Positions 3,011 through 31,030 of a stretch of DNA of 37,674 bases are shown here, piece by piece. Source of the DNA: Dicyema japonicum (lineage: Eukaryota; Animalia; Dicyemida); assembly GCA_011109175.1 (NCBI GenBank), contig RDEW01000144.1, forward strand, positions 1 to 37,674. The letters run 5' to 3'. Position 1 is the first letter of the stretch; every line of letters begins with the position of its first letter. The notes beneath the pieces are model-generated. The model did no database searches and was not told where the DNA came from. It saw only the letters and a list, made by a program, of their open reading frames with translations. The translations under genes and the position numbers were made by a program.

Positions 3011-3189
3011 GGTAATGGTGCAGTTTAATGAGCTATATTTTTTTCGAGAAAACCATGTTATTTAAATTTATTCAAATATAAAAGAGAAAGTTACTCTAAA
3101 TATGCTGATATAATTAATAATATACTTATTTATTTTATTATTTCTTATTTTCTCAAAAAAAAATATAGCTCAATAACTGCAACATTACG
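3011..3189. mobile_element. MITE, about 180 bp, with about 40-bp imperfect TIRs
   Basis: The left end GGTAATGGTGCAGTTTAATGAGCTATATTTTTTT pairs with the right end AAAAAAATATAGCTCAATAACTGCAACATTACG. The interior is AT-rich and non-coding. No TSD found. Confidence 0.75.
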
Positions 3190-3375
3190 AAAAGATGACG
3201 GTTCTTTTCTATACATGCTTCACGAAATTTCATTATATGAATTAATGAAATTTTTTTTGAATATTAGATCTAAAAATAAAAAAATGAACAATGCTGAATT
3301 TGTAAATATTATTATATAATTTTTTAAATAAAATTTTGAATTTTTTACCGGCTTGTGAAGAGTAATATAGTTGTT

Positions 3376-3773
3376 ATGAGAAAATATTCAAAACTGAAGG
3401 ACTACAAACTACCACTTCTGAAATGGAGTCAGTTGCCTTCCTTCAGGAGGTTGGAGTCTTTCCGAAAGAAATGCCTTAAAAGACATTTGATGATCCTTTT
3501 TCATCAGCGGGAAAATACAACATGGGTGTGCGATAAAAGCGATGTAAACCTCAAAGTTAATTACAGGTTTATCAAAATTTGCTTATAAATTTGCAGACGA
3601 AATTTTATAGACCCGAGGACAGGTGCACATACGCAGACTGTTGAGAGGTTCACATAAAAATTAAATAGGAAAATTTAGAATGTGGGGAAGCGCAAAATGC
3701 CGCAATAAAAGACAAAGAGGTAACGCGCGTCACTTCATGGGTTCATATTTTGAAGGGTTTCTTTTTAGGTAAA
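3376..3773 (+). pseudogene. Merlin transposase remnant: N-terminus and C-terminus retained, most of the catalytic core deleted, two candidate introns (3567-3596, 3648-3678)
   Basis: N-terminal SEMESVAFLQEVGVFPK and a Cys-containing stretch, with frameshifts. The spliced C-terminus reads LKVNYRRNFIDPRTGAHTQTVERMWGSAKCRNKRQRGNARHFMGSYFEGFLFR*, matching the VNH..NFVDP.TG.HT[N/Q].IE..W pattern of DDE_Tnp_IS1595 proteins. Confidence 0.85.
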
Positions 3774-3959
3774 AGGTCGTTGATAGCTCAGCATTGACTT
3801 TGTCGGTATCGTTTTAACACTACTAATTAGTAAAGATTTAGCAATTTATTTAAAAAAAATTTATAATAATATTTACAAATTCGGGATTGTTCATTTTTTT
3901 AAATTTTTTCATTAATTGATTAAAAAAATTTCATTAATTCATATAAAGCCTTATTTCGT

Positions 3960-4140
3960 TTTTAAATTTTAAATTGTAGCGTGGCGTTATGTGGTCGTTA
4001 TGGTCCACCAATTCAAAAATTTCAAAATGATTTGGCAACCCCCAGAGGGCTTCTAATGCTCTCCCGAAAAGGACCATTAGACCCCTTCCCCCCGTGGTCA
4101 TTATCGACCCCCGGCGATGTGCACAAAAAATTAAGAAAAG
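3960..4140 (+). mobile_element. SINE-like insertion in the right TIR of the Merlin element
   Basis: Flanked by a 13-bp direct repeat AGCCTTATTTCGT (3947-3959, 4141-4153). Carries TAGCGTGGCGTTATGTG near its start, shared with the copy at 18855-19015. A-rich end. Confidence 0.7.
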
Positions 4141-4229
4141 AGCCTTATTTCGTGAAGTACCAAGATGACATCTTTGACAGTTTCCCCCAACGAGGAAAGA
4201 TTCATACTCTACAAATATTACTTTATTAG

Positions 4230-24839: not shown

Positions 24840-27125
24840 ATCAATCCTGGAATCGCTGATACGTTGTGGCTTCTACATTGGATCGAACAAAATCATTTGT
24901 GAGTGGATGAAGAGGCGCCCTCTTATCTGCTACAATTTCGAACGAATTGGTCATATCGCCCCACATTGCAAGGAGAAGAAAAGGTGACCCAAGTGTGGAG
25001 GGGAACACGACCAAACGTGGAGACAAATTGTGGAGGAGAAGACATAATGGCCGTTACAGTGGATGTCCTGCTATGAAAGAGGCATCCAAGAAAATTATTC
25101 CCATACAGACAGTCTAGAAAGGAGAAGATCAAACCAACACAAGAGATAAATTGGACAAATATATCACATTTTCAGGGTGGGACGGTGGAGCGGAGCGGTA
25201 CAAAAAAACTTATGCAGTGCAAATCAGAAGTTTCCGAGACGGTATCTCGAGAAGCGGTGAAGCAAACACAAGAGATGATGAGGACCAATATATCACATAC
25301 TCAGGATGGGTCAGTGGAGAGGAGTGCTACACGGAAACTTGAGCAGAGGAAGGCAGGAGTTTCCGAGACGGTGTCTCGGAAACTAAATGAAATTATCGCT
25401 CTTCTGAACAACCTAGGTACACTGCTGAGAGTGGATTTATGGAGTCTGGTGGACCTGGCTGTGGAGAGCGCAGGACAACAACAAAAACTATGTAATTTGA
25501 AAATAGTGCAGATGAATGCCCGCTCCTTGGTGAAAAGGCATGATGAACTATCGCTTTTTGCGATGAATGCCAAGGTGGATTTCATGGCTGTCAACGAAAA
25601 TTAAACACGGATAAAAGTATAATATAAAAGGATATGATTTGGTGGACAATCCATGGAAAGATAGAGAAGTGACTGGAACCTCGATCTTTTTTCATAAAGA
25701 ATTGCAAACACGGAACGACTGTATTGTGTTGGAAGACGACTCGGAATTCGTGTCCGTTGATGTACAATGTGGAGGGACATGGATAAGAGTGAGAGGGCTA
25801 TACTCTAAGGACCTGAATTCTAAGAATACGAGCTACGGATGTAGGAAAAAAATGAGGAACATAATAATGTGTAACAATATCCAGGAAATGTTTAAAAAAT
25901 TTTTTGTCGAGTTGAAACTTATTTCCATCGACCTGGAAAAGGTCGATTGTTCGGATGATTGGAAAGAAAGGAAAATCAAGATCTAATCCAGAAAATTATA
26001 GACCAATTAGTCTTATTTGTTCAACTTCAAAAATTATGAAGAAAATTGTCTTCAATATATTATCAAAAGTGGTTGAGGAAAACAATTTTCTTGCAAACAA
26101 TCAGTGAGGGTTCCGTAAAAATAGATGAACTGAAGACTGCATCTGGGAACTTAGAAAGTCAATTCAAGAATCTATAAGTAAGAAAGAATACCATACTGCA
26201 ACGTGTTTGGACATATCCAAGGGTTTTGACAGTGTCTGGCATGAAAGACTTCTAGAGAAATTGTCAAAGGCGAACATTGGAAAGTCGGCGCTCATGCGGA
26301 GTAGAGACTTCCTTATGGGAAGAGAGTCTTATATTCGTGTGGGAAATATGCTCTCTAAAAAGATAAAACTAAGTAGAGGTGTTCCACAAGGTTCAATTTT
26401 GAGTCCCCTCCTCTTCAACTGTATAAGGAGCGAGGTACCAAAACCGGAACACATCAATACCAAAATCATAATTTATGCAGACGACATTCTAATTTTGGAC
26501 ACTAGTATAAATATATCAATATCATGGAAAAGAACAGTAGCTGTAACCTGGATATCAAGAAAAAAAGTTCTGTAACCTGGATAGCGAGAAATAGGAGGAA
26601 TCAATATGTTGATACAGGGAATTCTCGGAAAACCTGATATACATTGGAGTATGAATTAACAAAAAAGGATCGTTTAAAGAGCACATCAAAATACGAAGAG
26701 AGAAAGCTACAGGAATGCTCAAGTCCATACTCGGCTTTCATTTGTCTCCAGGTACTTTTATGTTTGTCTACAAAACGTGTATTGAACTTTTCCTAATATA
26801 TGGATATCAAGGTTGGTTTAAAACAGAGGAGGAATCAGACCTACTAACTAAATTAGAAAAGACAAGAAGGTATGCAATTAAACTTGCACATGGATTGGAT
26901 TTAGCATCTGAAATTGATGACGAATACGAAAGAAAAACGAGAAGAATCGGTGATTTATTACATTGCTTGTGGAAACTCGTATTGTAATTGGGGCTTTTTA
27001 CGGAGAAGAGACATACGGTGTCTCATGAGAGTGTCCCGATATAGACGACCCCAAATCTTGGCTTTCCTCTTTAGTTAATCTTGACTCTTACCTTGTTTAG
27101 TTAGTTGGGGTTTTACGAATAAATT
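24840..27125 (+). mobile_element. Near full-length but decayed, internally deleted Jockey/I-group LINE (ORF1 zinc knuckles, APE, RT, 3' UTR)
   Basis: CYNFERIGHIAPHC, *PKCGGEH and NCGGE..Y.GCP knuckles (24925-25075); APE start LKIVQMNARSL (about 25497); NYRPISLI; DISKGFDSVWHERLL; GVPQGSILSPLLFN; IYADD. Confidence 0.92.
25136..25390 (+). repeat. In-frame tandem duplication, period 129 bp (43 aa), in the LINE ORF1 C-terminal region
   Basis: AACACAAGAGAT starts at 25136 and 25265. The units translate as TQEINWTNISHFQGGTVERSGTKKLMQCKSEVSETVSREAVKQ and TQEMMRTNISHTQDGSVERSATRKLEQRKAGVSETVSRKLNE. Confidence 0.85.
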
Positions 27126-30269: not shown

Positions 30270-31030
30270 TCATTATTATTATTATTATTATTTAAGCCAA
30301 AGAAACACCGTCTTAACCAATAACTAATATTCAGGTGATCCCAGCATCTCTCAATAATCGGGCCATTTTTTCTCGATGCTCCGACCGTGATCCCACGCAT
30401 TTTCTACACGGACGGGAAGTCTTTTTTCTTTCCTCTTCTGAAATTGCCTCCAGTTGCCTCTATGATAGACTCGAGTGCTCTGGGGGCAATTTCTTTATCT
30501 GTATATTTTTCCAGTAATTTTTTTGCTCTTGACTGGATCTCTTGAATTTTTGTTAGGTTCGTTGCCGACAGGTTAGATCCCCATGCAGCACATGCATAGC
30601 CTATTGTTGGCTCGACATACTGCTTGTAGAGGGTCCCAATACCTGGCAGATAAATTCCTCCACAGTTCCAAAGGAAGGCCTATACAAAATTGATCTTCTT
30701 TGCACAGGTTGATATGATAGATTCTACATGGGCTGAGAAGCAGAGGAAAGTATCAAAAGTTACTCCCAGTATCTTCTGCGATTTCTTTTGTGATATAGGT
30801 ACTCCATTTAACGTGACATCAATTGTTTGCGTTCCTATCTTTCTATTCTTAGTAAATAGAGTGACTACTGACTTTTCGGAACATGCATTTAATCGATTTT
30901 CACACAACCATCCAAATATGTTATTTAGTATTCTTTGTAGTCTTCTTTTAGCATGTTCGACATTTACGTCTCTAGATGCAACAACTATGTCATCGGCATA
31001 AGAAAGTAGCATGTCATTATTATTCATGAC
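30270..31030 (-). mobile_element. 5'-truncated Jockey/I-group LINE (YADD to 3' end, (TAA)n tail)
   Basis: ORF 30680..31027 has SYADDIVV and KILGVTFD. The frameshifted tail ends SEHREKMARLLRDAGIT*. (TAA)n lies at about 30272-30293. Confidence 0.9.

Follow-up and report, generated by a model that had tools for sequence, protein, structure and literature searches.

Host-sized GT-AG introns in the transposase gene of a Merlin-like DNA transposon family of Dicyema japonicum, one of them found in a single subfamily

A 37,674-nt stretch of the Dicyema japonicum genome, referred to here in its entirety as the window, contains the remains of a transposase gene whose reading frame is broken by two short insertions, and the question it raises is whether these are introns, and if so how a mobile element came by them. 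Read directly from the sequence, the first insert (3567-3596) is 30 nt long, runs from GTTTATC to TTTGCAG, and has an in-frame TAA inside; the second (3648-3678) is 31 nt long, runs from GTTCAC to AATTTAG, and shifts the frame. Each splits an Arg codon as AG|A, which makes both phase 2. The original prediction, made from the window alone, was of a Merlin transposase gene with two miniature GT-AG introns in phase 2, and its coordinates and intron ends proved exact.

The element that carries them lies on the forward strand at 3200-4161 (962 bp, including a nested insert). It was delimited by homology, which in more than 40 genomic copies begins at 3199-3205, and by its termini, GG at 3200-3201 and CC at 4160-4161; immediately outside these, the 8-mer AAGATGAC is found in identical copies at 3192-3199 and 4162-4169, as a perfect target-site duplication (TSD). 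The left terminal inverted repeat (TIR) and subterminal repeat (GGTTCTTTTC-TATACATGCTTCACGAAAT..., 3200-3348) form an I1/I2 pair with 3830-3946, and their terminus is that of the family ends. Translations, together with alignments to the copies on C31 and C365, identify 3423-3541 as a remnant of exon 1 (MESVAFLQE...WVCDKS, a zinc-finger-like N-terminus), in which a 5-nt deletion has shifted the frame. It stops at an internal deletion junction (3541/3542), marked by BLAST breakpoints in many copies, where the remainder of exon 1, exons 2 and 3 with introns 1-3, and most of exon 4 have gone, and with them both catalytic Asp residues. The stretch at 3550-3773 is no complete gene: of the seven exons that the longer copies described below show, it holds only 5, 6, and the tail of 4. 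By alignment, what is left of exon 4 is its final 25 nt (3542-3566; ...LKVNY and the Arg codon up to its second base), leading into the first insert, which is intron 4 of the family gene; then come exon 5 (3597-3647; RNFIDPRTGAHTQTVE plus the split Arg, with the presumed catalytic Glu inside), the second insert, which is intron 5, and exon 6 (3679-3755; MWGSAKCRNKRQRGNARHFMGSYF..). At a second junction, which comparison with the C365 copy puts at about 3756 (3755-3757), intron 6 and exon 7 have been lost along with a portion of the 3' non-coding region. The sequence EGFLFR* at 3753-3773 was considered as a C-terminal exon 7 and ruled out, as it is this deletion junction.

The right end seems at first truncated at 3959, and the true end becomes visible only once a nested repeat is recognized. 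The right subterminal inverted repeat (3830-3959) is followed, within the right TIR, by a 181-bp SINE-like repeat with an A-rich 3' end (3960-4140), flanked by a 13-bp duplication (AGCCTTATTTCGT, at 3947-3959 and 4141-4153); at least 40 scored copies of it (from 73 candidates) are found elsewhere in the genome at 82-93% identity. Beyond it, comparison with the right ends of the C365 and C367 copies identifies a terminus remnant (...CGTGAAGTACC, 4141-4161), about 15 nt of which are missing relative to the family ends. With both catalytic Asp exons lost and a frameshift in addition, the window copy is dead: an immobile, internally deleted, MITE-like element. Two other copies, on C18 and C68, have the same junction at 3541/3542, which means that the deleted form has itself transposed.

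The surroundings are mostly repeats. Just upstream of the Merlin left end is a 20-nt inverted repeat (3025-3044 and 3157-3176, 95% complementary) flanking an AT-rich stretch of 112 nt, and could represent a hairpin or a further small element. Among window ORFs of at least 110 aa there is no conserved host gene, only fragments of reverse transcriptase; ORFs at 26207-26572 (forward strand) and 30683-31027 (reverse strand) match RVT_1.

Copies of the element were sought in the whole assembly (67,542,437 b, 377 contigs). Besides the main family, subfamily A, which is that of the window and the most abundant lineage, the same genome contains two related subfamilies, B (C31:12876-13419 and C201) and C (C74). 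The ends of many copies give the family termini as GGTTCTTTTTCAATACATGCTTCACGA and GGTACTTTTGCAATACATGCTTCACGA. An 8-bp TSD is present in five or six copies besides that of the window: the C46 copy, too, has a perfect one (GGAAATAC), and four further copies match at seven of eight positions. In a six-frame scan of the genome with PF12762 (DDE_Tnp_IS1595; cut-off 27 bits), the main-family C31 copy scored 30.4 bits and subfamily B 41.3 bits; exon 3 alone gave 24.5 bits for A and 28.3 bits for C. The window exons of 22 and 30 aa, which are very short as queries, found no match in Pfam. A 73-aa family exon matched 2761 library proteins at E<=0.001, the best at 58-62% identity, and no near-identical predicted protein was present in the library. 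Counted by eye across exons 3-5 in full-length copies, 38 residues separate the TD of HTDKW from the E of TVE, consistent with the DD(36-38)E spacing of Merlin/IS1595-like elements; in P0048, an unrelated Merlin protein of the library, the corresponding spacing is 37 residues. On all four features tested (transposase domain, termini, TSD, and catalytic spacing) the family is thus a Merlin/IS1595-like DNA transposon, as the original prediction, which also noted GG termini and an 8-9 bp TSD, had it.

How the two inserts sit in the protein was examined by tblastn of the window DNA with the 295-aa P0048 as query. Residues 218-241 align with a 10-codon gap lying exactly over 3567-3596; the alignment restarts at residue 244, in another frame, after 3678. 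The two residues left unaligned between these parts correspond to the split Arg codon and a Met, so that homologues are collinear across both inserts with no residue missing or extra, and the motif spacing expected upon removal of both does hold. These comparisons were made exon by exon, on the sequences as they stand. With GT..AG ends, and with frame and homologue collinearity restored by their removal, the inserts at 3567-3596 and 3648-3678 behave as spliceosomal introns would be expected to. Retention of either would truncate the protein, intron 4 by its in-frame stop and intron 5 by a stop after two codons. Intron 5 was predicted to lie immediately after the presumed catalytic Glu, and its position is indeed one codon past it.

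The longer copies (C31, C365, C367, and C212) extend this from two introns, as first proposed, to six, all GT..AG and 26-31 nt long, between seven exons. Introns 1 (28 nt), 2 (26-27 nt), 3 (31 nt), and 6 (28 nt) are in phase 1, and introns 4 (30 nt) and 5 (31 nt) in phase 2. The sites are covered by 19, 10, 10, 10, 18, and 19 distinct main-family copies, in order from intron 1 to intron 6, and at none of the six is there a covering main-family copy without the intron. Lengths are near-invariant across main-family copies, and GT and AG are kept in most of them, the exceptions being as frequent as expected for copies differing by 6-12%. Intron 4 is GT..AG and 30 nt in 10 of 10 main-family copies; intron 5 is present in 18 of 18, with GT in 14 and AG in 16. 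No fully intact main-family copy was found among those examined. The longest (C31:43004-46214, minus strand) has a tandem duplicate of exon 3 around a single N, and a run of Ns after exon 7; both are likely scaffolding artifacts of a heterozygous assembly.

Intron 4 is supported by comparative evidence. In subfamily C, introns occupy sites 1, 2, 3, 4, and 6 (26, 22, 26, 23, and 26 nt, respectively), and in subfamily B they occupy sites 3, 4, and 6 (27-32, 30, and 28 nt), intron 4 thus being found at the same site in both, at 30 nt in B and 23 nt in C. GT..AG is kept in these introns, while their sequences cannot be aligned to those of subfamily A. Summed exon by exon, A and B are 72% identical, with pN 0.16, pS 0.67, and a dN/dS of about 0.11; the best global alignment of their introns reaches 58% identity. 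Positions and splice dinucleotides have therefore been kept through considerable divergence beside exons under purifying selection, which gives the introns a functional look and is strong comparative evidence that intron 4 is a real one. A conserved position with diverged sequence is found for introns 1, 2, 3, 4, and 6, which on this comparison appear old within the Merlin lineage, and is not found for intron 5.

Intron 5 has a different distribution. It is absent at the exact site in subfamilies B and C, as judged from one informative copy of each (C31:12876-13419 and C74); in the second B copy, on C201, a larger deletion spans the site. The B copy reads ...GTAGAGAGG|ATGTGGGG... and the C copy ...GTAGAACG|AATGTGG..., and both encode VER|MWG straight through, with introns 4 and 6 kept 51 and 77 nt away. 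The finding of copies without the insertions had been named beforehand as evidence against introns: within the main family none lacks either, and the sister subfamily precisely lacks the second alone, which favors a discrete intron-like unit that has been gained or lost. Merlin families of this genome that are more distant also read without a break through the intron 5 site. One of them, on C313 (minus strand, 1417-2601 of the segment examined), has an uninterrupted ORF of 394 aa (PF12762, 71 bits), and all six sites are without an intron; a short block of this ORF is duplicated around an X, which is probably an artifact of the assembly.

In a tree of exon 3 peptides, B is sister to A (support 94/84) and C lies further out. 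A single gain of intron 5 on the A stem, at an AG|G site, is the most parsimonious reading of these sequences, since the alternative needs one gain and two precise losses on the same tree. Two possible sources for the inserted sequence were considered and rejected: a pattern search allowing up to three mismatches found intron 5 only in the 18 family copies, which speaks against a multicopy introner, and its best match elsewhere in the element was no better than those of shuffled controls, which speaks against local duplication. Within subfamily A, the ratio of nonsynonymous to synonymous differences was 55:21 for shared and 141:41 for singleton changes (p=0.42); the two ratios are similar and give no sign of continued selection on the A transposase after the gain. 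That intron 5 arose recently and de novo, as a minimal spliceosomal intron of 31 nt inside a transposase gene that was still active, has about an even chance of being correct.

Four other accounts have to be set against this. The 31 nt at 3648-3678 could be no intron but a frameshifting insertion that killed the A transposase, after which A copies, the one in the window among them, were spread in trans by the transposase of a related Merlin. Such an event would account for the confinement of the insert to subfamily A, for the missing signal of purifying selection within the A radiation, and for the failure to see an intact A copy; cross-mobilization is also conceivable, since the right terminus of subfamily B ends, as A does, in GGTACTTTT. 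(The right end of subfamily B on C31, ...CATAAAAGTACC, has the same last 9-10 nt as the main-family terminus.) A killing insertion would, however, have had to arrive with exact GT..AG ends, for which the odds are about 1 in 256 if only GT and AG are counted, at the modal length of host introns, AT-rich, in an AG|G proto-splice site, and with frame and motif exactly restored by its removal, and would then have to characterize the most abundant lineage; it is unlikely. Intron 5 might instead be ancestral to A, B, and C, with B and C each having lost it precisely in separate events. Precise loss via reverse-transcribed mRNA is known, and loss prevailed in CACTA transposases (PMC4158355). Set against the single gain, this needs two independent losses in addition to the gain; it leaves B and C with the adjoining introns 4 and 6 intact only 51 and 77 nt off; and no intron is found there in any of the more distant Merlin families of this genome. 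Ancestry with double loss seems improbable to the same degree as the killing insertion.

The remaining two concern what both inserts are, or do. Chance GT..AG stretches, or insertions accumulated by a dead element, might be expected in a copy as heavily degraded as that in the window, but six of six interruptions are GT..AG and 26-31 nt long, all are present in every main-family copy covering the site, five are conserved in position across subfamilies, and the flanking exons have a dN/dS of about 0.1; an origin by chance or decay is very improbable indeed. The original prediction further suggested splice control of activity, in the manner of the P-element third intron, with retention or removal of an intron regulating transposition. 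The position of intron 5 one codon past the catalytic Glu, and the truncation expected from either retained form, could be read in this way by analogy, but any intron with a stop codon would act so, and the host has about five or six introns per gene. For the window copy itself such control is impossible, since it is frameshifted and the exons with the catalytic Asp residues are gone; for the family it would be a doubtful proposition, somewhat less probable than either the killing insertion or the double loss. The resemblance to the P-element IVS3, an intron in a transposase gene whose retention would truncate the protein, is only formal.

The reading preferred here, and very probably the right one, is that the window holds a MITE-like copy of a Merlin family whose seven-exon gene carries six introns of host size, intron 4 being old and intron 5 most simply explained as a recent gain. 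The most likely mechanism is that of an ordinary cut-and-paste Merlin: its mRNA would be spliced at the six micro-introns to yield a DD38E transposase; abortive gap repair would produce deletion derivatives such as the window copy; and these would be mobilized in trans, acquire an 8-bp TSD on insertion, and then decay. Removal of the introns from the transposase mRNA by the spliceosome is what we infer from the sequences, and would be necessary for any active master copy.

The size of the inserts, which the original prediction called miniature, is the norm for this host and marks no special class. In dicyemids the median intron is 27 bp long, and about two thirds are below 30 bp (PMC6543705); the D. 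japonicum assembly (67.5 Mb, 377 scaffolds, GC 36.7%) has a mean intron length of 38 bp (PMC6736024), and a gene contains about five or six introns of this kind (PMC6736024, PMC6543705). D. japonicum was the sole non-myxozoan animal found to have introns this short (PMC13644364). In a six-frame search of the same genome for tubulin, exon matches, judged from their coordinates only, were separated by about 31 and 37 nt. About 30 nt is an ordinary intron size in the host genome.

That a resident transposon has introns like those of its host argues for a long residence of this Merlin lineage in dicyemids, and makes it less likely to be a contaminant from the cephalopod host. The family also amounts to a natural experiment in intron turnover, with five positions long held while their sequences drifted and a sixth occupied in one subfamily only. 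If the recent gain is correct, intron 5 would be a rare and cleanly polarized animal case of intron birth, in a species whose introns are among the shortest known, with the intron-free state preserved in a sister subfamily of the same genome. The states before and after the gain would lend themselves to experimental comparison. Knowledge of Merlin transposition and of splice regulation is left unchanged by the finding.

There is a practical warning for annotation as well: transposon or gene finders with a minimum intron length above about 20 nt would call such transposases pseudogenes. As a separate observation, P0007 and P0021, which are two of the closest library proteins, depart from the Merlin motif directly behind VNH[KR], at precisely the intron 4 site, and seem to continue in a shifted frame beyond it; in these, gene prediction in another organism may have run through a short intron that it did not recognize.

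Among known systems, the closest is the Merlin superfamily itself, eukaryotic DNA transposons related to bacterial IS1016/IS1595 (Feschotte, 2004, Mol Biol Evol 21:1769, as cited in PMC3673617 and PMC8293314). The D. japonicum family shares with it the PF12762 transposase, a Cys-rich N-terminus, TIRs starting with GG, an 8-bp TSD, and the motifs VDESxFxKRKNNxGR, xTDxW, and HTQxVExxW, and differs in having its gene split by six introns of 26-31 nt. Repbase Merlin entries with several exons exist; in the literature searched, which did not include the original 2004 description of Merlin, nothing was found on whether intron-bearing Merlin transposases have been described.

Ogino and colleagues reportedly described ultra-short spliceosomal introns of dicyemids in 2010. 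The Merlin introns resemble such introns in being GT-AG and about 22-31 nt long, and in fitting the host median; they differ from those of host genes in residing in a multicopy mobile element, and in that one of them is polymorphic between subfamilies.

Introns have been gained and lost in the genes of other DNA transposases, including those of CACTA elements (PMC4158355) and of the bivalve Tc1-like TLEWI (bioRxiv 10.1101/656579). The acquisition of introns by a bacterial-type transposase gene, as proposed, is hence not new as a phenomenon. Common to all three is a DDE transposase gene in which the number of spliceosomal introns differs between related lineages. TLEWI has no TIRs and looks domesticated, whereas the Merlin family, which has TIRs and TSDs and exists in dozens of copies, with deletion derivatives among them, was for these reasons a true transposon; and while loss is the dominant process in CACTA, the one event that can be polarized in the Merlin family looks like a gain. 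Dicyemid micro-introns and introns in transposase genes were both already known, and the detail of interest here is the polarized presence and absence of intron 5.
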